Below, piece after piece: positions 636 to 55,581 of a DNA stretch of 64,000 nt (within the stretch, counting starts at the first letter, position 1; each line of letters starts with the position of its first letter). This DNA is from Callorhinchus milii (taxonomy: Eukaryota). Made by a program: the position numbers and the translations under genes. The stretch spans positions 3,534,001-3,598,000 of the forward strand of contig NW_024704771.1 of the NCBI RefSeq assembly GCF_018977255.1. Reading direction: 5' to 3'. The notes under the pieces were generated by a model. The model saw only the letters and a program-made list of their open reading frames with translations. It was not told the DNA's origin and made no database searches.

Positions 636-743
636 CGAGCCGTCCGCAAAGCAGACCTAATAGTCCAATGATAGACAGATACACAAGTCCTGCAAGAGTG
701 CTTCTCAATGCAAGCCGTTGACCTGGAATGTTACATTTTACAA
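636..743 (-). CDS. Gene A TM5 exon (108 nt): vVKCNIPGQRLALRSTLAGLVYLSIIGLLGLLCGRL
   Basis: TCTACAG acceptor, G|GTAAGT donor, phase 1-1, same length as B/C/D equivalents. Confidence 0.85.
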
Positions 744-1594
744 CTGTAGATAGAATTGTGAGTCTGAATTACATTTCAAATCTTGTATGAAAATATTGCA
801 CTTATCATTATAGGAAGAAGAACAGCAATAATAATTATTCTTGCTTTTGATATAGCGTCTTATCAGGTTGTTGAGACGCCTCAAAGCACTTCACAGATTG
901 ACTGCGTATTTTATGGGTGAAATACGGTAGCCTATTGAACACACCGATTTCCCACAAACAGTCGTGGATTGAACATCCACAGTCAGTTTAAACAGTCAGT
1001 TTAAAGTTGCATTCGAAGAAAAGTGGCTTTGGCAACACCATGTTCCCCCAATACTGCACTGACTCATCAGCGTAGAACGTAGACTCAAAGTCTAAACATA
1101 GGGGCTTCTGTTCCTGAAGCAAAGATGCTACCAAGTGAGTCAGGTCGACAAATAAAGTATTTGAAACAATTTCTATAATAATAATAATCTTGCACGAGAT
1201 ATAGCACATTATAAGGCGTTGAGACACCTCAAAGCGCTTCACAGAATATACTGTAAGTGAATTGACTGTATATTTTGTGGGCAAAACTCGGGAGCCAATG
1301 GCGCACAGCAGTGTCCCACAAACATTCATGGATTGAAAACACATGCATTCATTGCTTTGCACACACCATCAAGTCTTGAAAAATTAGTCACCAAACTACA
1401 ACTCGCCAGTAAGAATGGGTTTGACTATCTCATTGACCTCCAAACTTATTTGTATAACAATGTAATAATTCTTGACCTTGCAAATGTAAGAATTTGGTCA
1501 CCCTCGGTCACTCTCCTACCCGTACCATCCCTGCCCTCCACCCCTCCTGATTTCACACCCAGCTCAGGTCCAAATCCCTCACTGTCCAACATTT

Positions 1595-1923
1595 TAATAA
1601 TAATAATAATAATAATCCTTGCATTTGATATAGCGCTTTTCACGTCAGGAGGACGTCGCAAAGCGATTCACAGAACACACTGTAAAGTGAATTGACTGTA
1701 TATTTGTGGGCGAACGCGGCAGCCAATTGCGCACAGCAATGTCCCACAAACAGTCGTAGATTGAAAATGACCAATTTATTATTGTTTTTGGTTTTGGAGG
1801 GATTATTATTAGGCTCTGTGTGGAGTAAGGAAACTTGCCCAAGGTTTCGCCCTCTGCCTGGAATTGAACTCAGGTCTCTCGCTCGCAAAGCGAGTACTCT
1901 AACCACTGAGCTACAGGACTCCA
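1595..1923 (-). mobile_element. Young full-length tRNA-headed Deu-domain SINE
   Basis: A/B-box tRNA-like head TGGAGTCCTGTAGCTCAGTGGTTAG...; GCTGTGCGCAATTGGCTGCCGCG core; L2-like 3' end and (TTA)n tail. Confidence 0.85.
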
Positions 1924-2100
1924 ATTTTGGGATATTCTCCTGACATGAGAAGCACTGTGTAAATGTTATCTATTGTTGTTGGATGACTCTTAAAGAGCAA
2001 CAAATGGAGCAATGAAAATCAGTTAATTCTACTTTTTGATGACCATATATTTATCCATACTCAATTTTTTGTTTAATATAGTATAATATGAATTACTCAC

Positions 2101-2181
2101 CAATTTTGCTTGTATTGTAAATCGGGACACATGAACACAGGATAGCAAACAATTGATAAGCAAGCAAAATGTTTCGATGAA
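2101..2181 (-). CDS. Gene A TM4 exon (81 nt): lHRNILLAYQLFAILCSCVPIYNTSKI
   Basis: TTGACAG acceptor, G|GTGAGT donor; homologous to C exon HRNTILVYEVIAVFISFIPIYKAKQN. Confidence 0.85.
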
Positions 2182-3623
2182 CTGTCAAGTGAATAAAATT
2201 TGTATAAATAAATAGCAGCTAACTTTTGAAGTAATAATGTATATTTTGGGTGCTCAGAATATGTTGTTCAAACAAGTTGTCGTTAATATCTCTGTCAATT
2301 CACTTTACAGTATATTCTGTGAAGCACTTCGAGACATCTCAATGACGTGATAAGGTGCTGCATCAATTGTGAGTATCATTATTATTATCCCACTTACATT
2401 TTATCTTTTACGTTTTTCTTGTTAAATATTCTCAGACTTTTGCCTCCAAATAATTTAATAGCAATGTGATACGTTCTTCTGAAATAACATTTACAAATCA
2501 CATGTTTTTTTCTTTTTTGGGCCTAATTGTAAATATTCCAAATCAGTATGAATAGTTTAGTAACATGTAGGCTCAATTTTTCAAATTTACTGCTGGCTGC
2601 ATTACATAATAATGTTCATCACATCACTGAGATGTCTCAAAGAAATATACTGTAGTAACTGTGCATTCTGCCAAGTAGTGTCCCATAAACAGTCATGGAT
2701 TGAGTTACCTTTTTTTTAGAAAAGTATTATTTCCCCCGGAAAGCGATCTGCCAATCGACTAACAACTGGGTTCCTACTTGCTACTTGGAGTAAGGAGACT
2801 TGCCTGAGGAATTGACCGTGCCCGTAAATCGAACCTGATTGATTGCAATATGCAGGTCACGTTCAAAATGTCTATTTGCCTATAATAGGTCTATCTAATT
2901 TACTCCACATATATACTGTAGAAAGCAGGTTATCCATGAAACTTCACAAGTGCAGCGATGCTGCAATGTAGCTTTTATTACTGCTGCAAATATATTTGCT
3001 TTGCATAAAGCTTTTCCCTTTGTAGTATTCTGGTTTGTGAAAGACTAATTTCAATCACCTTACGACCTCATCCTCAAACGTAAGAAGACATTGGCTTTTT
3101 GTATCGATCATACTATGCCAAGAAGCGGTGTAGCGGCACAATCCACCATGGGTTTGAAGAGAGAAAATTAGAGGTGTAGGAAAGTTAGCGGCGGAAGAAA
3201 AATCAGAATAATGTTGGACAGTGGAATTGAATGAACAGCTTGCTGAGAGACCTGGTGCAGACTCGATGAGCTGAATGGCCTCCTTCTGTGCTATAAATTT
3301 CTATTCCTATGTTCACTCATAGCCGGAGGAATCTGTCACTTCAACTTGGACAACTGACCCTCATCACAGGATCAGCACTCTGCCCAACATGTTCAGGGGC
3401 TGCCCACACTGATGGAGAAATGTCTGTTTGATGTGTGTCTGTAAGAGTAACCTCACCAACATGGGGTTTGACGAGTTTATTTAATTAGTTGTTTGATGAC
3501 TGCCTGCAGTCTTTCTTTCCCTTTTGCCTCTAACACACATCAATAGGAACAATACAATTTGGATCAGTAGTTTTGGTCTGCGGAGAGGGAGAAATAGCAA
3601 ATCGGGTTTATAAATGAACTCAC

Positions 3624-3752
3624 GCATGTTCAACAATATTGAACTTTCTGATTTACTAGCAAGATACAGAGCGAGAGCACCAGTGTAAACCATCATGACT
3701 AAAACTACAAGTCCGAGGATTCCTGCAAAGATTCTATATCCTAACTCCATGT
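3624..3752 (-). CDS. Gene A TM3 exon (129 nt): dMELGYRIFAGILGLVVLVMMVYTGALALYLASKSESSILLNM
   Basis: TTTTCCAG acceptor, C|GTGAGT donor; YR(I/V)xxG motif shared by all four genes. Confidence 0.9.
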
Positions 3753-4583
3753 CTGGAAAAGATCAAAACAAAGAATTATTATAATTATTATGCAGTGAAA
3801 CAGAGAGTGAGTGTGCAAAACTACAGCAACAACAACTTGCATTTATTTAATGCCCCTCATCAGGGTAGCATCCCAGAGTGCTTGACAGTTGTGGAGCACA
3901 ATGCTAAGCCAGGGGAAGTGACCGCAAGCACGGTCAAAGAGGAACGTCTTCAGGCATGACCTGAAGATGGGTAAGGAGGGAGCAATGTGGAGGGATTGAG
4001 GGGGAGTATTTCAGATTTTTGGGCAGAGTGGCTGAAAGCACAGCACCGATAGTGGAATGGAGGGCATTAAGCACATGCAGGAGCCTGAAGGCAGTTGAGT
4101 GGAGGCAGCAGGTAGTGGGTTGGTGGTTAAGCAGGTCGGAGAAGTAGGGAGGTGCCAGGGTATGAAGAGATTTGAAAGTGTGACAAATGCCCATCTCACA
4201 GTGTCCCACAAACAGTCGTGGATTGAGTGACCAATTTTTTTGGAGGGATTATTACCCGCGGAAAGCAATCCACCAATCAACTAACAACTGGGTTCTTTCT
4301 TGCTGCTAGGTAAACAGAGGCATGTGGAGAAAGGAAGCTTGCTGAACTAATCAGGTATAAAATTAGAGAGTTCAGTCAGGAACGTGCAGATCTGAAGTCT
4401 CCCGGCTGCCTGCTACTCTCACAGGGAGATCACTACTTAATTCTCCTGTTACTTGCCAAAGGTTTTGCCCGGCCTGTAAATCAAACCCTGGCCCTATCAC
4501 TTGAGAGGTGAAAACGCTAACCATTATACTACTCAGTGGTAAATTTAAAGTGCAAATCCAAATTTCAATGAGATGCAACATAC

Positions 4584-4685
4584 CTGCTTTAAAGGTGCTC
4601 AAAAGACATGCAACAAACAGACATTTCACCGAGATTAGTTGTAGGAGTATAAACAATGCAGTGAGCCTCAGGTGGTATTTCTTAA
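4584..4685 (-). CDS. Gene A TM2 exon (102 nt): vKKYHLRLTALFILLQLISVKCLFVACLLSTFKA
   Basis: TTTACAG acceptor, G|GTATGT donor; lies within ORF 4372-4698. Confidence 0.9.
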
Positions 4686-5239
4686 CTGTAAACAACAAAT
4701 AAATATAAATAAATATTTAAATTATTTAAATGAAATATCAGTAAATTAAAATACTAAATTTTGAAATCTGAAATAAAATACAAATTTAAAAATGGAAGTG
4801 GTTTATAAACTCGAGCTTAATATTAATAATAATAATCCTTGTATTTGATATATGATATACAGCAGCCAATTGCACAAAGCAGTGTTTTACAAACAGGGGA
4901 AGGAAGGGGCAAGCCGGAGGGATTGGGGGAGAAAGTTTCAACGCTTTGGGATGTACTGGCTGAAAATGTCCTGTCGATGGCGAAGCAGAGGGCATAAGGT
5001 ACAAAAAGGAGGCTGGAGCCAGCTGAGCGGAAGCAGCGGCAAGTAGGTTGGGGAGTAAGCAGGTTGGAGAGGTAGCGAGATACCAGGGCATGAATGGATT
5101 TGAAGACGAGTGTGAAGATCTTGAAATCGATCCATTCTGTGATAGAAAGTCATTCGAGCCTAGCAAGGACTGGTGTGATGTACGGAGCTTAGAGTGGATG
5201 AGATTACAGGCGGCAGGCTTCATAACATGCATTTATTAC

Positions 5240-5356
5240 CTTTGTATTTCTTCAAACCATAGAAGATTATGAATATTCCAGCAGCAAAGGTAGTTATATT
5301 GCTAATCAGTGCCGTTAAGGATGCAGAAAGCAAATTCTGATATGCATTAAGAGCAC
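5240..5356 (-). CDS. Gene A TM1 exon (117 nt): gALNAYQNLLSASLTALISNITTFAAGIFIIFYGLKKYK
   Basis: TGTTTCAG acceptor, G|GTAATA donor; AL(I/V)SN motif shared by all four genes. Confidence 0.9.
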
Positions 5357-5980
5357 CTGAAACAGGAAACTAAACATATTTAGTTCAAAATCGAGTATTT
5401 AATAAAATGAAGCCAGGTAATAAGAGAAGAGGCAAAACAGATCTAACATTGCAGAGAATAAGCAGAGTGACAAATTAGCAAAAGAGAAAGGAATACACTG
5501 CTAGTGGAAAAAAAAACAAATGCAAACACCACAAAAAAGATATCCAATACACAACGATAGATAAAGTGCAGGAACTATAAGCACATTGCAACCGTGTTAC
5601 AGAAATGGCCAAGGACCATTATCTGAATCTCAATTATAATAATAATCGTTGCATTTGATATAGCGCCTTATCATGTAGTTGAGACGTCTCAAAGGACTTC
5701 ACAGAATATAATGTAAAGTGAATTGACTGTTTATTTTGTGGAAGAAACGCGGCAACCAATTGCACACAGAAATGTGCCGCATACAGTCATTATTATTATT
5801 CATTTTGTAGGGGATTATTATGCCTGGAAAGCGATCCACCAATTGACTAACAAGCGAGTTCCTATTTACTGCTTGGTAACCAGAAGTGTGTGGAGTAAGG
5901 AAACATGCCCAAGATATTTGATTGTGCCATATCTGGCCATTGTCTAATGACAGAATACAAAATCAGGTTAACAAACCTAC

Positions 5981-6232
5981 CGTCAACGATGAGAAAGTAC
6001 GAGCGGTTTCTCTGGCTGACCTGGTTTTTTACATTGCACGTGTACCAGCCACAGTGTGAGATCTTTGGATTATTGAAGACCAATGTGTTTTCATAATCCG
6101 TATTGTTTATAATTTTATCTCCTCTTGTCCACCAAATATTAATGTGTTTGTTTTCTTTAATGATACAGTTCAGTTTAACAACATTAGTCACGTAGATGGG
6201 ATCTTGAATGATCAGTGGTAATGACAAAAGTT
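5981..6232 (-). CDS. Gene A Ig C2 exon (252 nt)
   Basis: TCCCATAG acceptor, G|GTAGGT donor; C...W...HCGWYTCNVKNQVS Ig motif. Confidence 0.93.
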
Positions 6233-6875
6233 CTATGGGAAAAACACAGACAGTATGAAAATTCTAACGAGTGTTAGGCTCTTTAGATAACAATCCAGAA
6301 GGACATTCCTTAATTTACCATCTAAGAAGTGCAATTTCAGAGAATCCTCATGATAATAATTATCCTTTGATATAGCACCTTATCATGTCGTTGAGACGTC
6401 TCAAAGCGCTTAACAAAATATACTGTAAAGTGGATTGACTGTATATTTTGTGGGCAAAATGTGGCAGCCAATTACGCATAGTAGTGTCCCCACAACAATT
6501 GTGGATTTTTTTGGGGGTATTATTAACCCTAGAAAGCGATCTCCCAATCGACTAACAACTAGGTTCTTACGCACCGCTAGGTAAACAGAGGTGACTGGAG
6601 CAAGGAAACTTACCCAAGGTTTCGACCTGTCTGGAATCGAATCTGGTTCCTCTTGCTTGCAAGGCAAGCTCTCTAACTACTACACTACGGGACTCCAAAC
6701 TAGGTCAGGAAGATCATTTAAGTACCAGTTCGATGTGGTAGCCAGAGGTAATCTGGAAAATTTAAATGAGCTAACAGACTCTCCTCGCTCAAAAACGCCT
6801 GTTGTGATAATAAATTGCCTGAAATGTAAATATTACTTTAAATTGAAAAAAGTCTTATACGTTACTATCACTTAC

Positions 6876-7226
6876 TTTCAATTTCCAAGTATATGGTGTT
6901 CGCAGAATAAAGATGGAATCTTTCAGTGATATTGCTTACTTTTTGTATCTGTCCTTCATAAATGCCACTATCGGTCATTTCTAAATGCTGAAGTTTGATA
7001 GATCCGGTCCTTTTATCAAACTTCAGTCGACGTTTATAAAATATATTGATAAGAATTCTGGTTTCAGGAGATGAATATCGCAGGATAACTGTATTCTTCT
7101 CAGGAATGATATAGAACCAATTGACCTTTTCATTTGATTCAAGATATTCGTTATAATATGGATTCATGGTAACAGAAGAATCTAAACTAGCAAAAATAGT
7201 TTCATTGCTCGTCAGGACAGGAGAAT
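6876..7226 (-). CDS. Gene A Ig V exon (351 nt), CD2/CEACAM-like without the B-F disulfide
   Basis: CTTTTCAG acceptor, A|GTAAGT donor; W..., GSIKLQHLEMTDSGIY motif. Confidence 0.92.
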
Positions 7227-8359
7227 CTGAAAGAGATGCACGAAATGTTCATTTGTTGAGTTATTATAAATATAATAATAATCCTTGAATTTGATGTAGC
7301 ACCTTAAAATGGTGAAGAAGGGAACAAGGTGGAGGGATTGAGGGAGAGTATTCCAGACTTTCAGGATGTAGTGGTTGAAAGTGAGGCCACCAATGGTGGA
7401 ACGGAGGGCACAAGGGACAAGTAGGAGGCCAAAGCCAGTCGAGTAGTGGGTTGTGGCATAAACAGGTTGGAGATAGGGTGTCAGGAAAGGATTTGAAGAT
7501 GAGTGTGACGATCTTGAAATCAATCCATTCAGTGATAGAAAGCCAGTGGAGCTTAAACATGGTACACCAATGATCTTTTGCAATCAAACCATTGTTTCCC
7601 ATCACATATATCACATAATCTAATATTTTGTAGGACTTACTTCTTATATTAATGACTTGGTCCTCTTGCTTGTTAATTTGCAAAACTGACTTTAAAATTA
7701 TACTATTGTCAATCACTTTCAAATGCCCTAACAGAAGAGAATAATAATAGTAATAATCTTGCATCTGATATAGCACCTTATCTTGTTTTTAAGGCATCTC
7801 AAAGCTTTCACTGAATTTACTGTAAATAATAATACCTACATTTGACACAGCACCTTATGAAGTCTTCGAGACATTGTCTCATGAATTGTCTGTATATTTT
7901 GTGGGAGAAACATGGTAGCCAATTTCACAAAGCAGTGTCCCACAAACACTTATGGATTGAGTGACCAAATTATTTTCAAATTTTTTGAAGGGATTATCAT
8001 CTCCGGAAAGGGGATCCGCCAATTGACTAACAACTGAGTTCCTACTTACTGCTGGGTAAACAGAGGAGTGTGGAGCAAGGAAACTTGCCCAACATTTCAC
8101 CACGCTTGGTAAACTAACCCAAGTTCTCTTGCTTGCAAGACGAGTGATCTAACCAATGCACTCCAGGACTCCCTTAGGGTTTAATGGGGAAGCGTAATCT
8201 GGGCTTTTGAAAAATTATGTAATTAAAACTAGTATGTACTGTGCAGAAATATTCTTGACTAGACTTCAGTTTAAATCCCATTGTTTTGAATGACTGTTGT
8301 ACATAAACCCCTCTTGGAATGTTCATTGATGTCGAAATGTATTGCTCCAAATTTAATAA

Positions 8360-10100
8360 TACAACAAGAACAAAATGACATTTATAGAGCACCTTTCACG
8401 TCGTGAGGATGTCCAAAGCACTGAACAGTCAGGTGTCGGGGCCCGAGCATGCAGGGCGAGGTGGTGTAGGGGTGAGGGAAGGCAGAGGGGTGGGAGGGAG
8501 ATCCAAGGCACGGTCGAAGAGAAGGGTCTTGAGATCGGCCTTGAAGGAGGCGAGGGAGGAATCGAGGCAAAGGGACTGTGGGATGGAGTTCCAGAGGTTG
8601 GGGGCAGAGAGGCTGAAAGCTCGGCCAATGATGGTAAGGTGGGTTGGGCGGGAGACATGGAGCAGGACGGAGCCCGATGAACGGAGGGAGCGGGCAGGTT
8701 GATAGGGAGTCAGCAGGTCAGAGAGGTGGGAGGGGCAAGGCCATGTGGGGGAGCCAGTGGAGTCAGGTGAGGGTGGGACTGATGGGGTTACGGAGTTGGT
8801 GCGTGAGAGTTCACAAGCTGCAGTTTTCGTTGATCTGCAGCTTGTGAAGGGAAGAGTTGGGATGGCTGATGAGGAGGGAGTTCCCGTAATCAAGCCTTGA
8901 GGTGACGAATGCGTGGGTGAGGGTTTCAGCAGCCTGAGGGGTGAGGCAGTGGCAGAGTCTGGCAACGTTGCGGAGGTGGTGGTAGGCAGTGCCAGTCATG
9001 GGGCGGATGAGGGGGAGAAAGTACAGTTCAGGGTCAAACAAGACACCAAGGTTCCTGACTGGTTTAGTGAGGTTGAGTGTGCAGCCATGGAGGATGATGC
9101 TGCCAGCGCCTGAGGTACGGAGGCGCTGATGCGAGCCAATCAGGAGGGCCTCCGTTTTGCTGACGTTGAGATGGAGAAAGTTGGCTCTCATCCAGGACTT
9201 GATGTCGGACAGGCAGTCAGTCAGGACGCCAGTGGTCCTGGAGTCCAGGTGGAGGCAGAGAGGTAGAGTTGGGGATCATCCACACACGTGTGGAAATTCA
9301 CTCCATGTCTGCAGATGATGTCACCAAGGGGGAGCATGTAGAGGGTGAAGAGGAGGGGACCGAGGACATAGCCCTGAGGAACACCATACGAGACAGTGCG
9401 GGGGCTGGAGGAGAAGACGTTTGCTGCGACGAACTGGAAGTGGTGTGAAAGGTAGGACCTGAACTAGTCAAGGACAGGAAGAGGTGGGAGGAGAGGCGGT
9501 GGAGGATGATCGAGTGGTTCCACGGTGTCAAAGGCAGCGGAGAGATCGAGGAGGATGAGGAGACAGAGGGAGCCTTGGTCACACATGGTCAGGATGTTAT
9601 TTGTGACCTTGACCAGAGCAGTTTCCGTCCTTGGGCAGCAAGGAAACCCGATTGGAGGGGTTCATGGAGGGAGTAAGAGGAGAGGAAAGAGCAAAGCTGA
9701 GAGGCAACGGCTCGCTCAAGGACCTTGGATAGGAAGGGGAGATTTGAGATGGGCCGGTAGCTAGATAGCTGTGATGGGTCGAGGGAAGGTTTCTTCAAGA
9801 TAGGAGTGATAGTGGCTGTTTTGAGGGGGGAAGGAACAGTGCCAGATGACAGGTAGAGGTTAATGATGTCGGCAAATAGTGAGACAAGGAGGTGGAGCTG
9901 GGATTTAAGGAGAGGGGTAGAGATGGGTTCGAGGGAGCAGGTGGTGAACTTCATAGAGGTTACCGTGTTGAAGACAGAGGAGGGGGTGATAGGTTCAAAG
10001 ATGTGGAAGGAGGGATGGGTAATTGTCGGATGGGTATTTGTGTGGGGTGGGGGTAGGGAGGGGCTGGAAGTTGAGGACGCAGTGGTAGTTGAGTAGATTC
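8360..10100 (-). mobile_element. L2-clade LINE, 5'-truncated, RT to 3' tail, frameshifted
   Basis: ORF pieces RANFLHLNVSKTEALLIG, FVTSRLDYGNSLL, YRPISNLPFLSKVLER. Confidence 0.9.
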
Positions 10101-10769
10101 CCTCGATTTAATAATAATTCTTGTATTTGATATAGTGCCTTATCACTTTCTTGAGATGTCGCAAATCACTTCACAGAATATATTTTAAAGTGGATTCCTA
10201 CATCCATCTTGATTGGTTTGCAGAGAGGCAAGCAGCTGCTCCCCGGTCTGCTCCACATCCCCCGCCCTAACCGTCCTACCATCGGTGGCCGGGCCTTCAG
10301 CCTCTCAGCCCCGAGGCTCTGGAACCCCATCCCCAGTGCCTTCGCCGCCTCCTCCCTTTCCTCCTTCAAGGCCGGTCTCAAGACTTTTCTCTTTGACCGA
10401 GCCTTCAGCTCCCCTCTCGACTCTCTGCCCCCTCCTCGCTCCCTCCCTCCCTCACCCTGACCATTTCCCCACTGCTCGGGTCCTGACCCAACTGTCCTGC
10501 GCCTTGGGACGTCCTCCCGACGTGAAAGGCGCTCTATAAGTGGAATCTTGTTGTTGTTGTTGCTTAAACTCCAACTGATGGAACCATCTCTCAGTGGGAA
10601 GGGATGTGTGCCCGAGCTGCGAACAGGAAGATGGTTGCAATGTTCTCATGTATTTCATACTGAGCTGTGATGCCCATCCAAAAACTCGCAGTGAGTTCTT
10701 GAAACCTAGTGAGGCTCAAACCCGCGCTCATCGGATATCAAAGAATAATAATAATTCTTAAATTTGATG

Positions 10770-11092
10770 CAATAATCATAATCCTTGCATTTGATATAGC
10801 GGTTTTCACGTCTTCTCGACGTCTCAAAGCGCTTCACCGAATATGCTGTAAACTGAATTGACTGTAGATTTGTGAGCGAAATGCGGCAGCCAAATTGCGC
10901 ACAGCAATGTCCCACAAATAGTCATGGGTTGAAGTGATCAATTTATCATTGTGTATTTTTTTTCTTGAGGGATTAGTATCAGGCGTGTGGAGTAAGGAAA
11001 CTTGCCCAAGGTTTCGCGCTGCTGGGAATCGAACCCAGGTCTCTCGCTTGAGAGGCGAGTGCTCTAACCGCTGAGCTGCAGGAATTCCATAC
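10770..11092 (-). mobile_element. Older SINE of the same family (similar decayed copies at about 6350-6700, 7740-8170, 13200-13480, 19810-20130, 29105-29462, 32335-32720, 38690-38930, 49915-50230, 52975-53350, 58280-58560)
   Basis: tRNA-like head, Deu core and tail recognisable with substitutions. Confidence 0.75.
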
Positions 11093-11393
11093 CTTATCAC
11101 ATGGCGCCTTATCGCGTTTGTTTAGATGTTGCAAAGTGCTGGAGAGAGTGGACTGTGAGTGTCACGTCTGTATATTTTTGTGGGTGCAAAATGGCAGCGG
11201 AATGACCATCTCGTGACAGCTGTCCTCCAATAAACATGGGGTTCGCGCTTGCGTGTGGAATTCTCAGTTGGGTTCGAATACCCATTGATGGGTTTCCACC
11301 TGTGCCATCAAATGGGTGACCCAAGAAAATGATAGAGCGACACACTGGCGCTCCCCCGCCAGCAGCTGTGCGGCAGCTGCGGCTGGAAGTGGA

Positions 11394-11835
11394 CCTGTGC
11401 TGCAGTTGTAGCTGTGCTGAAGCTGTGCTGTGGCCGTAGTTGTAGCTGTCCCACAGCTGTAGCTGTGCTGTAGCTGTAACTGTGTTGTGGCTGACGTTAT
11501 AGCTGTGCTGAAGCTGTGCTGTGGCTGTAGTTGTAGCTGTCCCACAGCTGTAGCTGTGCTGTAGCTGTAACTGTGTTGTGGCTGACGTTATAGCTGTGCT
11601 GTAGTTGTAGCTGTGGCTGTAGTTGTGCTGTGGCTGTAGTTGTGCTGTAGTTGTAGCTGTAGCTGTAGTTGTGCTGTGGCTGTAGTTGTGCTGTAGCAGT
11701 GGCTGTGGTGTAGTTGTGGCTGTGCTGTAGCTGTAGCTGTAGTTGTGCTGTTGCTGTAGCTGTGCTGTAGTTGTGCTGTAGCTGTGCTGTGGCTGTAGTT
11801 GTGCTGTGGCGGTGCTGTAGCTGTGCAGTGGCTGT
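11394..11835. repeat. Degenerate (GCTGT/AGTTGT/GCTGTG)n microsatellite at the start of gene A intron 1
   Basis: Directly visible. Confidence 0.95.
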
Positions 11836-11844
11836 GCCGCTTAC

Positions 11845-11887
11845 CCTGAGGCGCCAGGAGGAGCAGGAGAGCGGCTGTGAGCAACAT
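11845..11887 (-). CDS. Gene A leader exon MLLTAALLLLLAPQ
   Basis: ATG plus hydrophobic core, CAG G|GTAAG phase-1 donor, splices in frame to the V exon. Confidence 0.88.
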
Positions 11888-33062: not shown

Positions 33063-33071
33063 GCCGCTTAC

Positions 33072-34750: not shown

Positions 34751-34837
<87 letters not shown>

Positions 34838-43277: not shown

Positions 43278-43547
43278 CATCGATCAGGAGGACACGTGAG
43301 TGTCTGTTCAGGCTGACGTGGTTTTTCACAATGCATGTATACATGCCACAGTCTACGAGTGTTGGATTTGTAATGATCAGTGTGCTGTTGTTAAATGTTA
43401 CATTCAAATGGCTGTCACTGTATAGAGTTTCACCTTCTTTCGTCCAAGACATGTTATAAATCATTTTGTTGTTGAGAAGGCAACTCAACACAACAACATT
43501 GCCCACATAGCTGGGTTCCTTCAGTATGATTGGTATTGGCAGTTTTT
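43278..43547 (-). CDS. Gene C Ig C2 exon (270 nt)
   Basis: CTTCTATAG acceptor, G|GTAGGT donor; C...W...DCGMYTCIVKNHVS. Confidence 0.92.
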
Positions 43548-44503: not shown

Positions 44504-44857
44504 CTTCAATTATCAACTCTGTGTAGACCTCATTTATTTCAGTAACCTTGGTTTGAAGATCAAGCTTTTCTGATCTTTTACAATATAGACCACTGTCTTC
44601 TTTTTCTAATTGCTTCAATAGAAGAGATCCTTCACTTATATTTGCTCGATGCCTGTATAGATGATGCAGAGAAGCAGTCTCATAGCGAGTAACATAGCCT
44701 CCGATAATTATCTCACTTTCACGTGTTACATGTTTCCATTGCAGAAAATCAAGTGTGTTGAGAGTTGTGAGTGTGAACCCAGCAAATACAACTGAGGAGC
44801 CCAGTACACGATAAATCGGTTTTCTAAATTCAATGCTCTTCTTTTCATCTGAAGATT
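44504..44857 (-). CDS. Gene C Ig V2 exon (354 nt), absent from the ORF track
   Basis: TTCTTGCAG acceptor, G|GTGAGT donor; open frame ...LQWKHV...GSLLLKQLEKEDSGLYC...; homologous to D V2 (IYRV..SSV.F.G). Confidence 0.9.
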
Positions 44858-45090
44858 CTGCAAGAAATACAATACTACAAATATAATTTTTAGCTGTTAT
44901 TCAATCAGCACAAAAAAGCAAGAAAAAAGTTCAGTTTCAAACAGCAAAGAATAACAGATTTATAATAATAGTTATAATTGCATTCGATATTGAGCCTTAT
45001 CACGTCTTCGAGACGATCCAAAGTGCTATACTATAAAGTGAATTGACTGTATACTTTGTGAGTGAAATGCGGCAGCCAATTGCATATAGC

Positions 45091-45392
45091 TCAGTGGTTA
45101 GAACACTCGCTTTGCAAGCGAGAGACCTGAGTTCAATTCCAGGCAGAGGGCCAAACCTCGGGCAAGTTTCCTTACTCCACAGAGCCTAATAATGATCCCT
45201 CCAAAACCAAAAACAATAATAAATTGGTCATTTTCAATCTACGACTGTTTGTGGGACATTGCTGTGCGCAATTGGCTGCCGCGTTCGCCCACAAATATAC
45301 AGTCAATTCACTTTACAGCATATTCTGTGAAGCGCTTTGGGACGTCCTCCCGACGTGAAAAGCGCTATATCAAATGCAAGGATTATTATTAT
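45091..45392 (+). mobile_element. Young SINE, slightly 5'-truncated, nested in an older antisense SINE (about 44985-45630)
   Basis: TATAGC at 45085-45090 and 45393-45398 (TSD). Confidence 0.85.
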
Positions 45393-45805
45393 TATAGCAG
45401 TGTCCCACAAACAGTCGTGGATTGAGTGACCAATTTATTATTTTTATTTTTTTGAAGGGATTATTACCCCGGAAAAGTGATCCACCAATCGACTAAGAAT
45501 CGGGTTCCTAATTCCTGCTTGGTAAACAGAGTAATGTGGAGTAAGGAAACTTGCCCAACATTGCGCCCAGAAATCGAACCCTGGTTCTCTCGCTTGAGGG
45601 GCAAGTGCTCTAATCACTTAGCTACAGAACTGCACTAGGAGGGTGACCGAAGGAGCGGTCTCAAAGGAATGCAGAACAGTTTTTAGGATTCAGATGTGGC
45701 CACTTTATCATGGCAGGAAATCCACCTGCCTGACACCTCAATACTGTAATGAATTCCAGGGACAGTACCATTGACTCTCCCGTTATAGCAGTCGATTAAT
45801 CTGAC

Positions 45806-46102
45806 CTTTAGATGGTGCAACTTCATCCGTTCCATCTCGTTTTCTTGGTTGAAAATTCATTCTACTGTCATTCATTTCCAAATGCTCCAACAGGAGAGAA
45901 CTGTAACTCGAAGGGTGTATTACATGGCTCCGGAGATTCTTAAAATGGGATGTACCCACTTCATATTCCAAAAACGGTGACATCTCATCATACGTGGGAT
46001 AGTTCCATGAGTTCAGCTCACTGCTTTGATTGTTGTTTTCAGAAAACTGAGGGTGAAGAACAGAGTACTGTTCGAGACCAGATTCATATTTCTTCTGGTG
46101 AC
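45806..46102 (-). CDS. Gene C Ig V1 exon (297 nt), open but degenerate
   Basis: TTCTTGCAG acceptor; LEYEVG and SLLL shared with D V1; DxGxY replaced by DSRMNF; weaker G|GTCAGA donor. Confidence 0.65.
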
Positions 46103-46910
46103 CTGCAAGAAAAAATTGGTTAGTTTTAACAACAACTTGAAATTATATAACGCCCTGCAAGCCAGGAAGTGGCCCAGAGTGCTTGATTGTGACTGAATTT
46201 TGGGATACGGTGGCTCATAACACAGCCACTGAAGGTTGAATGGAGGGCACAGTTTTTGCGCAATACCTAGGAAGAAACACTCTAAAAACAAAATGTTGAT
46301 AAAATGTGCCTGGCCTGCTTTCCGTTTCTGAACTGAATGCATGATTATATGCCCATCCCGCCACCCTCCCACCCCATTATTGATCCTCTCACTTGTCTAC
46401 AAATCCTTTCACGCCCTGGCACCCTCCAGCCTCTGCGACCTGCTTTCTCCCCACTCCACAATCACTGCCTCCACTCCGCTGGACTCCTACTTAACCCTCA
46501 TCCCCTCTGATCCACCATTGGCAGCCGCGGTTTTAGACACTCTGCCATGAAGCTTTGGAACGTTGTCCCGCAATCCCTCCGCCTTGCCCTTCCTTCTCTC
46601 CCCCCAATCCCTCCTCATTGCCCCCTCCACGACTGTAGATGAGTCATCTCCCCCCCAGCTTGGTGTCAGGCTCCACCACTGTTAAGCACTTTGAGACACA
46701 CAAATATACAGACAATTTGCTTTAGTCTATTCTGTGAAGCACTTTGAGCGCTCTATCAAATGCAAGGATTATTATTATTATTATACCGTAAAGTGAATTG
46801 ACTGTACATTTTGTGGGGAAGGAAGACACGTGGACAAAACTTGATGGATTTACGAATTTGGTCCATTTTAATCTGACCCCCACCAGCCCCCACCCCTCGC
46901 TCACCCCGAT

Positions 46911-47337
46911 TGTGGCTGTGCTGTAGTTTTGCTGTAGCTGTGGCTGTAGTTGTGCTGTAGCTGTGCTGTAGTTGTGCTGTGGCTGTGCTGTAGTTGTGCT
47001 GTGGCTGTGGCTGTAGTTGTGCTGTAGCTGCGCTGTAGTTGTGCTGTAGCTGTAGATGTGCTGTGACTGTGCTGTAGTTGTGCTGTGGCTGTGCTGTAGT
47101 TGTGCTGTGGCTGTGCTGTAGTTTTGCTGTAGCTGTGGCTGCAGTTGTGCTGTGGCTGTGGTGTAGTTGTGCTGTAGCTGTAGATGTGCTGTGACTGTGC
47201 TGTAGTTGTGCTGTGGCTGTGCTGTAGCTGTGCTGTAGTTGTAGCTGTGCTGTAGCTGTGCAGTGGCTGTGCTGTAGTTGTGCTGCGGCTGTACTTGTGC
47301 TGCAGCAGTGGCTGTGCTGTAGTTGTGCTGTGGCTGT
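46911..47337. repeat. Same microsatellite in gene C intron 1
   Basis: Directly visible. Confidence 0.95.
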
Positions 47338-47346
47338 GCCGCTTAC

Positions 47347-47389
47347 CCTGAGGCGCCAGGAGGAGCAGGAGAGCGGCTGTGAGCAACAT
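47347..47389 (-). CDS. Gene C leader exon MLLTAALLLLLAPQ
   Basis: Identical to the A and B leader exons. Confidence 0.88.
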
Positions 47390-49246: not shown

Positions 49247-49287
49247 TCATTTCCTGAATTTTTTGATGGGATGCTTCCATTTCTGCA
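49247..49287 (-). CDS. Gene D candidate terminal coding exon: mQKWKHPIKKFRK*
   Basis: CATTTGCAG acceptor; homologous to the C terminal exon. Confidence 0.55.
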
Positions 49288-49691
49288 CTGCAAATGAAAT
49301 CAACAGACACTTGGTAAGCCCCCAACAGACATAATTGGAAGAATACCCATTTTAGATAATAATAATCCTTGCATTTTGTATAGCGTACTTCACGTCGGGA
49401 GGATGTCTCAAAACACTTCACAGTATTTGATATCAAGTGTAGGGACTGTATATTTTGTAAGCAAAATGACACTATGCTGTGCTGGAAAGCTAGCCAGCAA
49501 TTGACTAACAAGCTGGTTCCTACTTACTGCTAGGTAAGTAGAGGCGTGGGGAGTAAGGAAACTTGCCTAAGGTTTCACCCCACCCTGACTTAGACATTAG
49601 AACTGAGGAAGCATCTCTTCACTCAGAGCGTTGTGAAGACATGGAACTCTCCCCGAAACGCTGTAAATGTAGCTGCATAATTATTACTTAC

Positions 49692-49799
49692 TGAACTTTC
49701 CGAAAAAGAGAAAGAATATTCCAACAGCAACCAAATATACCACCACAGCAACAGTGACAAATACTGCCAGCTCTCCAATAGGAACATTACATGCCATCA
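49692..49799 (-). CDS. Gene D TM5 exon (108 nt): vMACNVPIGELAVFVTVAVVVYLVAVGIFFLFFGKF
   Basis: CTACCTGCAG acceptor, A|GTAAGT donor. Confidence 0.88.
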
Positions 49800-50233
49800 C
49801 TGCAGGTAGAAGTAGGAGCGTCTGAATTACTTACAGTTTGGTATAGAGAGCAAGTAACAAATGCAAATCAAGAAAATAATAGAGGGCAAAGAGGGAATAC
49901 CTAAATTATAATGCTAACAATAATAATACTTGCCTTTTATCACGTCGGTGAGATGTCTCAAAGCGCTTTATAGAGTATACTGTAAAGTGGATTGACTCTG
50001 TTTTGTGGATGAAATGCAGCAGCCAATTGTGTACAGCAGTGTGCCACAAACAGTCATGGATTGAGTGACTACATTTTTTTGAGGGATTATTACCCCCGGA
50101 AAGCAATTCACCAATCGACTAACAACCGGGTTTGTACTTAATGCTAGATAACCAGAGGCATGTGGAGTAAGCAAACTTGCCTAAGGTTTGGTCCTGCTCA
50201 GGAATCAAACGCAGGTACTCAATTGTGAGGCAG

Positions 50234-50275
50234 ACACACGTACACACACACACACACACACACAAACACACATAG
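50234..50275. repeat. (CA)n microsatellite
   Basis: Directly visible. Confidence 0.9.
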
Positions 50276-50307
50276 ATACACAAACGCATTTATTGGAAAA
50301 CACTCAC

Positions 50308-50388
50308 CATTTTGTTTGGCTTGCTGAATTGGTATAGATGAAATTATTATAGCTAATACTCCACATCCAAGAATAACCATGCGGTGCC
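50308..50388 (-). CDS. Gene D TM4 exon (81 nt): rHRMVILGCGVLAIIISSIPIQQAKQN
   Basis: TACTAACAG acceptor, G|GTGAGT donor. Confidence 0.87.
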
Positions 50389-50518
50389 CTGTTAGTAAAA
50401 GAAACAAATCTGAGGACATAGGGAAACTGTCACAGATGGTTGACTGAATTGTGTTGCTAACTCAGCTTCAAGGGCACCCTGCTTATTCCACCACGCCCAC
50501 CACAACAACAACAACTTG

Positions 50519-50842
50519 TGGAGTCCTGTAGCTCAGTGGTTAGAGCACTCACTTTGCAAGCGAGAGACCTGAGTTCGCTTCCAGGCAGAGGGCCAAACCT
50601 TGGGCAAGTTTCCTTACTCCACACAGAGCCTAATAATAATCCCTCCAAAACCAAAAACAATAATAAATTGGTCATTTTCAATCTACGACTGTTTGTGGGA
50701 CATTGCTGTGTGCAATTGGCTGCCGCGTTCGCCCACAAATATACAGTCAATTCACTTTACAGTGTGTTCTGTGAAGCGCTTTGGGATGTCCTCCCGACGT
50801 GAAAAGCGCTATATCAAATGCAAGGATTATTATTATTATTAT
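50519..50842 (+). mobile_element. Young full-length SINE with a 9-bp TSD, inserted in an L2 tail
   Basis: AACAACTTG at 50510-50518 and 50843-50851. Confidence 0.88.
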
Positions 50843-51540
50843 AACAACTTGGATTTATATAGCGCCCTCCAAGTCGGACAGCGTCTCAGAGCCCTTCACA
50901 ATGACGGATCCCAGGGCCCAGGGGGAGGGGGAAGAAGGTGACCAAAGGCGCGGTCGAAAAGAAAAATCTTTAGCTGAGAAATGAAAATAAGAGAGGGGGT
51001 GAGGCGAAGTGAGTGAGGAAGGAAGTTCCAGAGCCTCGGGGTGTAGTGGCTGAAGGAACGGCCACCGATAGTGGAGCAGAGGATTCGGGGGACAAGGAGG
51101 AGACCAGACCCGGTGGAGCGAGGGCAACGGGCACTGTTGTGATGAGAGAGGAGGTCAGAGAGGTTGGGACGTGCAGAGGAGTGGAGGGATTTGAAGACAA
51201 GAGTGAGGATCTTGAAATCGATCCTCTGTGGAATAGGCAGCCAGTGCAGTCTGGCAAAGAGTGGGGTAATCGGGGAGCGGAGTTTGGTGCGGGTAAGAAT
51301 GCGGGCAACAGAGTTTTGAATTACCTGGATTTTATGAATGGTAGTGCAGGGAAGACCGGCGAGGAGGGCAGTTGAATAGTCCAGCCGAGAGGTGACAAAG
51401 GCATGGACAAGGGTTTCAGCAGCTTTTGGGGTGAGATATTAGCGGAGACGGATAATGCGTCGGAGGTGGAAGAAAGCGGTGCTGGTGAGGGACCGGATGT
51501 GGGGGGGAGGAAGGATAATTGAGGGTCGAACCTGACGCCC
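50843..51540 (-). mobile_element. L2 3' fragment (many similar 300-700 bp pieces elsewhere, e.g. 3830-4190, 20370-21250, 28240-28660, 30620-31085, 36478-37050, 43790-44480, 53640-54310, 56080-56400)
   Basis: LHW.P...RIDFKIL coding remnants and (CAA)n tail shared with the long L2 copies. Confidence 0.75.
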
Positions 51541-51559
51541 ACCCCCTCCAAGAATGTCA

Positions 51560-51935
51560 GCCATGCTTAAGAGTCTCCAAACCAAGCTGAGAATTCCATG
51601 CATCCCACCTACGCACGGTAATCCCAGAGACAGATTGTTCAAATGGAATGCATACTCTCTGCCTAATAAATTATTAGGCGCAGGTTGGCAACAACCCAGG
51701 CTTGGGGACCCCAGAGTATGCTTTGGGGTAAATGCTGGAGTCTAACCAGCTAAAACAGCATAGCTTGCCTTTGATATTGCTGTCCGGCAAGCTTCCCCCT
51801 GCTTGTCCAGCTAACCCTACCCATTAGGGCTTTGCCTTGCAGGGTTAACAGGAGCTGAGTGGGAGGATTTCCTGCCCCCAGTGACTGGTCTGCCCTTCCA
51901 AACCGGCTGTGCTGTCATCAGCAACGACCTGGAGT
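51560..51935. repeat. Unclassified interspersed repeat of about 400 bp (copies at 39682-40090, 19283-19800 split by a SINE, 20130-20295)
   Basis: Shared AAGAGTCTCCA.ACCAAGCTGAGA, GGAGTCTAACCA, GATATTGCT...GGCAAGCTT and GGGTTAACAGGAGC blocks. Confidence 0.7.
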
Positions 51936-52383
51936 CAACATACAAAATTCAAGAGGCCTTTAAGATATGTCATATCGACATCAGAATGTGTCAGGAATTC
52001 ATTCCTGTTCCCACGGTATATAAATATGTATATGGTGAACCAAATCCATGACATATCAAAAACAGAAATCGCTGGGAATACTCAGCAGGTCAGGCAGCAA
52101 GGAAAGTGAGTCAACCTTTCGAGTCCATGACCCTTCGTCAGCACTGGAGGTTGCTTGACATGTCATGTCTGAAACTATACATTACATACCAAGAAAGTAT
52201 TTTCCAGCAGAAATCTATCTAATTTGTTCTTGATAACAAACAACACTTTATTTGTACTCAATTAGCAACTATCAGAAAAGATTCCTCTAGAACAGGAATT
52301 ACACATGGAGAGGTATCTTTAGCCTATGGGGAGACAAAAAACAGTTAACAAAATCAACACTAACAATTACTATTTTAACTTAC

Positions 52384-52512
52384 TCTTGTGTAACAAAAAG
52401 GACCTTGTTAGTTCAGTTTCAGGACGCAGGAAGAAGAAGCCAGTATAGATCATTATTCCAACAGCCGTGAGACAGCCAAAACCAGAGATAATTCTGTATT
52501 CAAACGAAAATC
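52384..52512 (-). CDS. Gene D TM3 exon (129 nt): gFSFEYRIISGFGCLTAVGIMIYTGFFFLRPETELTRSFLLHK
   Basis: CTTTTCTAG acceptor, A|GTAAGT donor. Confidence 0.9.
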
Positions 52513-53456
52513 CTAGAAAAGGGACATATTGAAGAATGCGGTGAATGGAGAATGTGAAACAACAACAAATCACATTTACAGAGCGCCCTTCATGTTGGGA
52601 GTACGTCCCAAGGGGCTGAACAGTCAGAGTTTGCACCCAAGCTGGGGGTTGGTATCAGGACAGCAAGGAGGGTAGGGATAGGAGGGTGACGGAACGCATT
52701 GTGGAAAAGGAAGTTCTTGAGACAGACCTTGAAGGAGTTAAGGGAGTAGGTGAGGTGAAGGATCTATGGGATGGAATTCCAAAGGAAAACACTGCATCCA
52801 TCTGAATAAATTTAAATTTCCATTTGGTGGAGAAAATGCATTTTTAGGCATTTCACATTCAAATGAAAAATTACTAAATTTTTCGGATAAACATTCTGTT
52901 TCATTCCTTGCTCGAGGAAATATGAATATCCTAGTTCTCTTTTTTGGATAACTGAGTGTCCGAGATCAATAAAAATAGGAGTCCTATAGCGTAGTGGTTA
53001 GAGCAATCGCCTCGCAAGCGAGAGGACCTGGGCGGGGTGAAACCTTAGGCAAGTTTCCTTCCTCCACACGCCTGTTTACCTAGCAGTAAGTAGGTACCAA
53101 GTGGCTACTTCATTGTAGATCCCTTTCCAGGATCCGCCAATCAAGGGTCCATCCCATAGAAAAACAAAATAAATAATAAGAATTTGGTCACTGAATCCAC
53201 AACTGTTTCTGAGACACTACTGTGTGCAATTGGATGCCGCGTTTTGCCCACAGAATACACTATCACTGCAATTTTCAATATATTCTGTGAAGTGTTTGAG
53301 ACATCTCAACGATATAAGGCGCTACATCAAATGCAAGGATTATTATTTTACTTTAAAAGAAGTAGAATTTGATATCAGCAGGAGCTACAGTTTGGCATCT
53401 GATAAAGCAGTATGAAAATGTGATGACAAAACAAAAGCAAAAAAAAAGAAACTTAC

Positions 53457-53558
53457 CCTCATCTAATACGCACAAAAAACTTGAAAGTAATAGACAAACC
53501 AAGGATAACATTTGAAAGAACACGCAAACAGCAGTGAGCTGGACATGACGTCTGTGAA
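53457..53558 (-). CDS. Gene D TM2 exon (102 nt): vHRRHVQLTAVCVFFQMLSLVCLLLSSFLCVLDE
   Basis: ATTCCTAG acceptor, G|GTAAGT donor. Confidence 0.9.
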
Positions 53559-54390
53559 CTAGGAATAGAAACAAATCAAAGTGAAATTATTTTTAAGGAA
53601 AATAAGCAAATGATCATACTCCAAGTTTTAAGTTCTGTTACATTGCCCCCCTCCGACCGTGACTTACCCCAAACTTAGTAGAAATCCTCGTATGTGCATT
53701 CATCACCTCCCACCTCAACTGCTTCAATACTATATTCACCAGTCTCCCCAGCTCCACTATACACAAATTCCAGTTAATCCAGAACTCCACCGTCTGCATA
53801 CTCAGCCGCACTGAACTCCGTACCCCATCACACCATTCCTCGCCAGTCTCCACTAGTTCCCTATCACACACACTAAACTTTGCACCCCCATCACACCAGT
53901 CCATGCCAGGCTCCACTACTTCCCCATCATTGAACGGATTGATTTCAAGATCCTCATACACGTCTTCAAATCCCTTCATGCACTTCCCTGCCTCTTCAAT
54001 CATTCCCCAATCAATTACCCATTGCCTCCGCACGACTGGCTCTGGCCTCCTGCTCGTCTCTTGTGCCCTCCATTTCACCATCGGTCATTGTGCTTTCAGC
54101 CACTATGCCCTGAAATTCTGGAACATTCTCCCTCAATCCGTCACTTTCCCCCCTTCTTCCCCATCTTCAGGTCTCACATGAAGACCTTCCTCTCTGACTG
54201 TGCCTTCAGTCACCTTCCCTCCTTCAGGCTCGGCATCATGCTCTGCCACTGTCAAGCTCTCTGAGACGCTAACCTGGCGCTATATAAATGCAAGCTGTTG
54301 TGGTTCTTTTGAAACAAAAATGAAATTCAAACTTGAAATAGCTTAGGCTATAATTTTGTAATGGAAGCCTTCCCAGGAAATACACGTTAC

Positions 54391-54507
54391 CTTTATATTC
54401 CTCCAGGGCATAAAAGATTATGAACACGGCTGCAGCAAAAGAGGTTACATTGCTGATTAGTGCAATGATGGACGCCATAAGAGAATGCTGATGAGCAAAC
54501 AGAATTC
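54391..54507 (-). CDS. Gene D TM1 exon (117 nt): gILFAHQHSLMASIIALISNVTSFAAAVFIIFYALEEYK
   Basis: TTGTTTTAG acceptor, G|GTAACG donor. Confidence 0.9.
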
Positions 54508-55314
54508 CTAAAACAAGAAACAGATGTAAATTTATCTTAGTTTTAAAAACATATTGGAAAATGACAATGATTTAGCGGTACTAGAATAGTAATGAGAGCA
54601 TTTTACCGCAGGAAAATTAGGCCATTAGGCCATTCAGCCCCTCGAGCCTGTTCAAACTTTCTATTAGATCGTGGCTGATCTGTAACTCAACTCTAATTAC
54701 CTGCCTTTGCCCCAGATCCCCTGACCTAATAAAAATCTATCCACTTCAGTCTTGACAATTTGAATGGATCCAGCATCCATAGCCTTTTGAGGAAGAGAGC
54801 TTCAGATTTGCACTACGCTTTGCTTGAAAAAAATACTTCCTGATTTCATTTTTAAATGGCCTAGCTCTAATTTTAAGTTAATACCCCCTTGTTCTGGATT
54901 CCCCCACCAGAGGAAATAGTTTCTCTACCTTATGCAATCCATTTGTTATTTCAAACACCTCAATCAGATCACCCCTTAACCTTCTAAACTCAAGGGAATA
55001 CAGAACAAGTTTAAGCAACCTGTAATAATTTAACCCAGTATCATTTTAGTGAAATTTCTTTTAACCTATGTCAAACCTTTTGGTGCTGAGGACTGGCTGC
55101 CCCATTTGGGAAATGTCCGCGAGCCTCATAAGCAATATTTTTGTGTTTCCCTTCCCGAAACATAAGATTTACAGGTTGTGGAGGGAGCGGAGGTAGGCCA
55201 GATGAAATGGTGTGGGAGGGGGTCTGGATGAAATCAGCCTGGGCCGGATGTGGCCCGCGGGCCGCCAATTGGACCACCCTGACCTACATGAATTCAAGAA
55301 CAGACCAAACCTAC

Positions 55315-55581
55315 CATTGATGGTGAGGAAATGTGAGCGGCTGTTTTTGCTGACCACATTTTTGACAATGCACGTGTACCAACCACAGTGTCTAAGATTG
55401 ACTTTTCTGATGATCAGCGTGCTGTTGTCATCCTCCAGTTTCCAATTTTCACTGAATTCAATTCCTTCTTCCCTCACCCAAAGAAATTCATTGGGGGTTT
55501 CATCATTTATAACACAGCTCAGCACAACAGAATCCACCACATAGCTGGGATCCTGAAGGATCATTGGTGCTGACAATATGT
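55315..55581 (-). CDS. Gene D Ig C2 exon (267 nt)
   Basis: CTCTAACAG acceptor, G|GTAGGT donor; C...W...HCGWYTCIVKNVVS. Confidence 0.92.

Follow-up and report, generated by a model that had tools for sequence, protein, structure and literature searches.

The window analysed here is a 64,000-nucleotide stretch of the elephant shark (Callorhinchus milii) genome, positions 3,534,001 to 3,598,000 of the forward strand of contig NW_024704771.1 (RefSeq assembly GCF_018977255.1); all coordinates below count from its first letter. By tblastn with exon translations and splice-site mapping, we found that this 64-kb window carries four tandem paralogs with a common exon design, genes A to D, all on the minus strand, which encode predicted surface proteins in which immunoglobulin (Ig) domains precede five transmembrane (TM) helices. 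Our subject is a pair of cysteines in these proteins, one in the C2-type Ig domain next to the membrane and one in the loop between TM helices 4 and 5, which an earlier note, made from the sequence alone, had proposed to be joined by a disulfide bond in the manner of CD47.

Each gene consists of a leader exon coding for a signal peptide, one V exon (genes A and B) or two (genes C and D), a C2 exon and five TM exons of 117, 102, 129, 81 and 108 nt, each of which encodes one TM helix. The exon borders are clean AG/GT sites and all the introns are in phase 1, so that the skipping of any exon preserves the reading frame. A 41-nt exon encoding a short tail completes genes C and D; a pattern search of the window located no such exon for gene A or gene B, and that of gene A may lie beyond the window start. 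The TM4 exon of gene B is divergent and was recovered by a splice-aware scan (AG, 81 nt, GT). The exons are as follows; position 636 is the last base of the gene A TM5 exon and position 55581 the first base of the gene D C2 exon.

Gene D, 49247..63195, minus strand (tblastn and splice-site mapping): leader 63195-63153; V1 about 59063-58827; V2 56818-56462; C2 55581-55315; TM1 54507-54391; TM2 53558-53457; TM3 52512-52384; TM4 50388-50308; TM5 49799-49692; tail 49287-49247.
Gene C, 37377..47389, minus strand (100% match to the protein of LOC103189488): leader 47389-47347; V1 46103-45807; V2 44857-44504; C2 43547-43278; TM1 41757-41641; TM2 41495-41394; TM3 40856-40728; TM4 39213-39133; TM5 38140-38033; tail 37417-37377.
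Gene B, 19083..33114, minus strand (tblastn and splice mapping, TM4 by scan): leader 33114-33072; V 29902-29552; C2 28945-28694; TM1 27462-27346; TM2 26635-26534; TM3 24704-24576; TM4 23450-23370; TM5 19190-19083.
Gene A, 636..11887, minus strand (tblastn and splice mapping): leader 11887-11845; V 7226-6876; C2 6232-5981; TM1 5356-5240; TM2 4685-4584; TM3 3752-3624; TM4 2181-2101; TM5 743-636.

Gene C is thus LOC103189488 (XP_042200799, 513 amino acids, hereafter P0001). Genes A, B and D can be aligned with P0001 from end to end, with an identity of 30-46% (45% for gene D), and no protein identical to theirs was present among those retrieved from the protein databases searched; these three apparently intact genes may be unannotated in the elephant-shark genome.

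The C2 exon of every gene encodes exactly three cysteines: the B-strand cysteine, the F-strand cysteine and an extra one, situated in a motif of the form H/A/D-C-G-W/M-Y-T-C, in which it stands where the customary D-x-G-x-Y-x-C has its first x. The V domains retain D-S/H-G-x-Y, and the C2 domains of CEACAM1, the closest solved relatives, have a threonine or an alanine at the position in question (D-T/A-G). The gene D C2 exon matches the Pfam families Ig_3 and I-set. The TM5 exon begins in each gene with a split codon followed by x-x-C-x-x-P. We verified all eight cysteine codons one by one (all on the minus strand):

Gene D, minus strand: HCGWYTC at 55390-55370, EF-turn cysteine codon (TGT) at 55385..55387; MACNVP at 49797-49780, TM4-TM5 loop cysteine codon (TGT) at 49789..49791.
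Gene C, minus strand: DCGMYTC at 43353-43333, EF-turn cysteine codon (P0001 Cys298) at 43348..43350; NMCKVP at 38138-38121, loop cysteine codon (P0001 Cys468) at 38130..38132.
Gene B, minus strand: ACGWYTC at 28769-28749, EF-turn cysteine codon at 28764..28766; TKCRDP at 19188-19171, loop cysteine codon (TGC) at 19180..19182.
Gene A, minus strand: HCGWYTC at 6056-6036, EF-turn cysteine codon at 6051..6053; VKCNIP at 741-724, loop cysteine codon at 733..735.

The earlier note had described precisely this arrangement, namely xCG(W/M)YTC and three cysteines in every C2 domain and xxC-x-x-P at the start of every TM5 exon, and all the strings were found on the minus strand at the places that this description implies. 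It had also stressed that both cysteines persist in paralogs that otherwise differ widely. Indeed, the pairwise identity of the four paralogs ranges from 29.5 to 46.2%. However, 66 of the 374 ungapped columns (17.6%) are invariant among them, as are five of the 17 columns that contain a cysteine, and conservation among four paralogs is therefore, on its own, only modest evidence.

We therefore turn to the wider family. A phmmer search with the membrane region of P0001 against 1.84 billion cluster representatives returned 36 relatives at E<=1e-3. The source was looked up for 20 of these, and all 20 come from cartilaginous fish (sharks, rays and chimaera): Narcine, Scyliorhinus canicula, S. torazame, Heptranchias, Amblyraja (whose match shares a cluster with a Leucoraja protein), Pristiophorus, Mustelus, Carcharodon, Heterodontus, Rhincodon, Mobula, Stegostoma, Chiloscyllium and Hypanus. 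In the databases they are mostly labelled 'uncharacterized', others being called 'HEPACAM-like', 'CEACAM21-like' or 'SLAM family member 9-like'; LOC103189488, LOC119976437 and LOC116969908 are examples. All four window genes have the two hallmarks of the family, a five-TM region homologous to residues 322-513 of P0001 and, directly upstream, a C2 domain with x-C-x-x-[YIF]-x-C. Word-index searches found few members (P0001 was the sole match with gene D as the query, and the family profile added one Narcine protein along with generic Ig proteins), so that the census rests on the exhaustive phmmer run. Literature searches on the locus, on CD47-like proteins in cartilaginous fish, on five-TM Ig-superfamily proteins in shark and on CEACAM in Callorhinchus yielded no relevant paper. 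Judging from these sequences, genes A to D are members of a multigene family of predicted cell-surface proteins which has not been described before and is so far found only in cartilaginous fish.

Across this family, the EF-turn cysteine is present in all the relatives that cover the position (29/29), and the TM4-TM5 loop cysteine in all those with a homologous TM5 (27/27; P0018 and P0020, which have a non-homologous alternative 3' end, are outside this count). The invariance is highly selective: a mere 13 of the 388 well-populated columns of the family alignment are invariant, and four of these 13 are the cysteines corresponding to P0001 C254, C298, C303 and C468, i.e. the B/F pair, the EF-turn cysteine and the loop cysteine. 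C468 is the sole invariant residue from TM2 to the C-terminus; the proline of the C-x-x-P motif is common, not invariant. Neither cysteine is lost singly in any retrieved relative, which was the co-conservation check proposed in the earlier note. Moreover, genes A and D of the window, together with P0010, P0042, P0027, P0054 and P0025, have exactly four cysteines in the ectodomain and outer loops; because the B-F pair takes two of them, the EF-turn and loop cysteines are the only possible intramolecular partners in these members. The family-wide data thus considerably strengthen the two-cysteine observation, which is confirmed.

Other cysteines and motifs of the membrane region were recorded along the way. 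A fifth cysteine, absent from the earlier note, is invariant in the window genes; it lies in the middle of TM2 (exons 53558-53457, 41495-41394, 26635-26534 and 4685-4584) and is variable in the family (cysteine in 23 members, serine in nine, phenylalanine in five, leucine and threonine in one each). We rejected it as a disulfide partner, as it is embedded in the membrane and not conserved across the family. Many elasmobranch members have additional cysteines near the outer end of TM2 (LLCVLD), at the top of TM3 (GxGC), or both. The residues that flank the two invariant cysteines differ between subfamilies; this tracks phylogeny only and was not used as covariation evidence. A conserved motif, D-x-G-F-x-x-x-Y-[RK]-x-x-x-G-x-G, is situated in the loop between TM2 and TM3 and at the top of the third helix (e.g. 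gene D, 52512-52384). It loosely recalls Tyr184 in the first extracellular loop (ECL1) and the helix-3 G191-L-G193 of CD47, with a spacing that fits one glycine only and without statistical support.

For the two cysteines to be joined, the loop between TM4 and TM5 has to be extracellular. This is the case: the leader and the Ig domains put the N-terminus outside, and four helices precede the loop, which is thus not cytosolic, in agreement with the topology assumed by the earlier note. Counts of lysine plus arginine are 2.8, 2.9 and 4.5 for the predicted inside loops and tail, versus 1.0 and 2.4 for the outside loops; the charge rule alone is weak here because the second extracellular loop (ECL2) is fairly basic.

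We also examined the junction between the C2 domain and the helices in AlphaFold2 models of gene C, the only gene modelled. The model of the C2 domain and TM region (residues 232-513 of P0001, with 24 family sequences) had a predicted local distance difference test score (pLDDT) of 85.2 and a predicted template modelling score (pTM) of 0.76, with five confident helices; the model of the TM region alone, likewise with five helices, scored 86.2 and 0.80. In the former, strand F (residues 68-75, model numbering) runs antiparallel to strand G (80-87) and helix 1 starts at residue 90, the G strand of the C2 domain passing into helix 1 without a linker other than the two residues between them. The EF turn is predicted at the membrane-facing base of the C2 domain: its cysteine, Cys67, directly precedes strand F and, because strand F pairs antiparallel with strand G, sits beside residues 88-89, just before helix 1. 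The loop cysteine, Cys237, opens a four-residue C-K-V-P turn that leads from helix 4 (206-236) to helix 5 (241-281), in a block (231-240) whose pLDDT is 83. The pTM is above expectation for randomly placed domains, which weakly suggests a fixed junction between the C2 domain and the helical bundle.

CD47 provides the precedent. Its Cys33-Cys263 bond (C15-C245 in the mature protein) joins the IgV domain to ECL2, the TM4-TM5 loop, where the cysteine stands in a C-I-P context; this bond is required for SIRPα binding and signalling, and is kept in the poxviral homologues (PMC10902115; PMC8410850). The facts about CD47 on which the earlier note relied are correct. For the chondrichthyan family, the most economical explanation of the data is a putative intrachain disulfide between the C2 EF-turn cysteine and the TM4-TM5 loop cysteine, to which we assign a probability of roughly 60%. 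The bond is a probable reading of four features: the invariance of the two residues, the parity of the cysteines, the outward orientation of the loop and the location of the EF turn on the side facing the membrane; its functional role is likewise inferred. In these proteins, a signal peptide precedes one or two Ig domains of the V type, which are devoid of the usual disulfide as in CEACAM and SLAM proteins; then come a C2 domain, a bundle of five helices and a cytosolic tail that is short and basic. In the model, the C2 domain is seated directly on the bundle, its G strand continuing into helix 1, and the EF-turn cysteine, at the start of strand F, would most likely bond the one invariant cysteine present in the four residues between TM4 and TM5. 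Such a bond would constitute a second anchor between the ectodomain and the bundle; it would hold the ectodomain at a fixed tilt and link the binding of ligands to the helices, in the way of Cys33-Cys263 in CD47.

Several observations weigh against this proposal. By a crude count of helix length, helix 1 comprises 38 residues whereas about 27 residues of helix 5 lead to the cytosolic face; in the absence of a tilt or kink in helix 1, the base of the C2 domain might therefore stand higher than the TM4-TM5 turn by some 10 Å or more, and with such a possible height mismatch the two cysteines need not be close to each other. Isoforms predicted to lack the C2 exon (P0006, P0008, P0024 and P0026) retain the loop cysteine without its partner, and the extra cysteines found at the TM2 outer end and TM3 top in many elasmobranch members could serve as alternative partners there. 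Furthermore, both cysteines being invariant, no covariation signal is possible, and since the Ig cysteine and CD47 Cys33 occupy different positions, homology gives no ground for a transfer from CD47. The Ig-to-membrane staple put forward in the earlier note is partly supported: it holds up as regards the invariance of the two cysteines, their status as the sole conserved mutual partners and the location of the EF turn at the base of the C2 domain; its CD47 style holds by analogy only.

Two of the alternatives do without a bond between these two residues. One or both cysteines could form intermolecular disulfides, giving a covalent homodimer, a heterodimer of paralogs or a complex with a partner chain: two unpaired, exposed and invariant cysteines would persist equally well if they were needed for covalent oligomers, the tandem multigene cluster makes pairing between paralogs conceivable, and the C2-less isoforms keep their loop cysteine. 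Yet this requires two bonds where one intramolecular bond, on the same face and at the same junction, would suffice, and the sole characterised Ig-5TM protein has an intrachain bond (PMC8410850); we hold such oligomers to be quite improbable. Alternatively, the cysteines might not be bonded together at all, that of the EF turn being a free or buried thiol or part of a redox or metal site, and that of the loop serving helix-turn packing, facing lipid or pairing with a cysteine at the TM2 end or TM3 top. The height mismatch allowed by the helix lengths and the extra TM2 and TM3 cysteines of the elasmobranch members fit this scheme. However, the latter cannot be the conserved partner, because genes A, B and C of the window lack them and they vary across the family; besides, exposed extracellular free thiols are rarely invariant across ~400 My, and many members have an even number of cysteines, exactly four. 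We consider this explanation unlikely.

Finally, the family could consist of true, very divergent CD47 homologues with an inherited staple whose Ig-side cysteine has moved to another loop. The design is indeed the same (an Ig domain on a five-TM bundle with its TM4-TM5 loop outside, a short tail, and a cysteine then a proline in ECL2), and the membrane domain is likewise spread over five exons, the constant part of human CD47 being exons 1-7 and its tails starting from exon 8 (PMC10902115). Moreover, poxvirus CD47 homologues are the top three matches in a Foldseek search of BFVD, over 243-299 columns with E values of 7e-5 to 6e-4, although their TM-scores are just 0.23-0.30. Every direct comparison argued the other way. 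The Pfam CD47 membrane family PF04549, carried by all the real CD47s that we examined, gave no match at E<=1 with three full-length paralogs and none at E<=10 with the four window TM regions or 21 family TM regions; nor was PF08204 (V-set_CD47) matched, Pfam assigning the ectodomain to Ig_3, I-set and, weakly, V-set. A TM-region profile found nothing at E<=10 among the PDB sequences. Alignment to CD47 by hhalign had a probability of 5-10% and was out of register, with TM2-TM3 of the family set against TM4-TM5 of CD47, and hmmsearch gave 6-8 bits where reversed-sequence controls reached up to 6 bits, so that the scores did not stand out from the controls (only mammalian sequences went into the CD47 profile, and the CD47 structure, 7MYZ (PMC8410850), carries a BRIL insert). 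Lastly, the best Foldseek match of the TM-only model in the PDB had an E value of 1.1, CD47 not being among the 50 matches listed; the C2-plus-TM model matched Ig domains only; and the ectodomain, V(-V)-C2 instead of a single N-terminal IgV, resembles that of CEACAM and not that of CD47. These comparisons lend no support to membership of the CD47 family, and a very remote common descent appears doubtful. As the searches revealed no likeness to CD47 in the membrane domain and the cysteine on the Ig side occupies another loop, the bond, if present, would be analogous and not positionally homologous: the best reading of the sequences and models is probably that of a distinct Ig-5TM family, so far undescribed, with a staple analogous to that of CD47.

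The remaining features of the genes concern the V domains, the isoforms and the surroundings of the leader exons. The V exons (56818-56462, 44857-44504, 29902-29552 and 7226-6876) do not encode the canonical B-F disulfide: the B-strand cysteine is absent, the F-strand cysteine is retained in gene C only (GLYCK), and gene B has one cysteine elsewhere (YECPH). Genes C (46103-45807) and D (about 59063-58827, minus strand) have an additional degenerate N-terminal V-like exon without cysteine, a counterpart of which was not found by tblastn in genes A and B; the nearest relatives of the latter two are skate proteins with a single V domain (32-38% identity). The C2-less isoforms mentioned above are NCBI predictions in several species, P0006 being isoform X3 of LOC103189488.

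The leader exon (MLLTAALLLLLAPQ followed by a GTAAGC donor) is nucleotide-identical across genes A-D (63195-63153, 47389-47347, 33114-33072 and 11887-11845, minus strand), and some 0.5-0.9 kb around each leader is 88-98% identical between copies, as against 30-46% protein identity elsewhere in the genes. This similarity suggests gene conversion or a strong constraint on a shared promoter/leader module. Minisatellites flank each leader exon: immediately downstream is an 11/22-bp array of the CTGTAGCTGTG type, and immediately upstream a 39-43-bp array rich in GC; 32-bp and 20-bp arrays are also present in two copies. The rest of the window consists of minisatellites and debris of short and long interspersed elements (SINEs and LINEs), which include LINE reverse-transcriptase fragments in introns and a SINE-like element of ~325 bp with many copies, up to 96% identical. 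The repeats located are:

11395-11835, 32852-33064 and 46911-47339: intron 1 minisatellites.
12160-12397, 33399-33587, 47658-47836 and 63480-63586: upstream minisatellites.
33594-34141 and 63618-64000: further minisatellite positions.
1595-1923, 19319-19648, 45087-45395, 50519-50842 and 62317-62621: examples of the SINE-like and LINE repeats.
25705-26199, plus strand: a further example of these repeats.

CD47 has been described as the sole immune receptor with five TM helices, its membrane fold having no match in any other protein (PMC8410850). A broader picture, which we advance as possible rather than probable, is that cartilaginous fish have a second lineage of Ig-on-five-helix receptors, independent of CD47, in which a fast-diverging V-C2 ectodomain of the CEACAM/SLAM type came by convergence to be stapled to a bundle of new fold and was expanded in tandem, possibly to yield recognition receptors. 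If true, this would qualify the view of CD47 as the only five-TM immune receptor with a unique fold (PMC8410850): a separate family of sharks, rays and chimaeras with its own cysteine pair in equivalent places would mean that the design is not a one-off. The family would then offer a natural comparison for the mechanical coupling of an ectodomain to a small helical bundle. Its members are, besides, candidate unstudied surface receptors with a rapidly diverging CEACAM/SLAM-like ectodomain in the oldest jawed-vertebrate lineage.

How the family compares with known systems may be set out as follows. Like its members, CD47 has an Ig domain directly on a five-helix bundle with the N-terminus out, the C-terminus in and a short cytosolic tail, an invariant cysteine then a proline in a short TM4-TM5 loop, a spare cysteine in the Ig domain on the side turned to the membrane, and a membrane domain encoded by five small exons. 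By contrast, CD47 Cys33 lies 8 residues before the B-strand cysteine of the IgV domain whereas the family cysteine is in the C2 EF turn; the loop context is C-x-P in CD47 and C-x-x-P in the family; a six-residue SWF linker replaces the two residues seen here; and the family is a tandem multigene one, known so far from cartilaginous fish only, with a CEACAM-like V(-V)-C2 ectodomain. The poxvirus CD47-like proteins (goatpox A0A075CIG1, squirrelpox Q1HTQ3 and Yaba monkey tumor virus 128L), which are the three BFVD matches and cover the Ig domain and all the helices, share the Ig-5TM design and have a conserved interdomain cysteine pair of their own (PMC8410850); with TM-scores of 0.23-0.30 and 12-14% identity, the likeness is one of architecture, with no demonstrated common fold.

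The ectodomain, for its part, is closest to that of CEACAM proteins, CEACAM1 being its top match in the PDB both by phmmer (1.2e-11) and by Foldseek (2.7e-6). CEACAM proteins (CEACAM1; PDB 9gh5, 3r4d and 5vst), which give the best matches in sequence and fold, similarly combine an N-terminal V-type domain devoid of the canonical disulfide with C2/I-set domains. They are, however, single-pass or anchored by glycosylphosphatidylinositol and have no five-TM bundle, in contrast to the five TM helices of the family, and their C2 motif, D-[TA]-G-x-Y-x-C, contains no extra cysteine. SLAM/CD2 proteins and HEPACAM also associate a V domain without the B-F disulfide and a C2 domain, but are single-pass proteins. 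The C2 domains of the SLAM/CD2 proteins have two intradomain disulfides, i.e. four cysteines; that of the chondrichthyan family has three, so that the partner of its extra cysteine must lie outside the domain.

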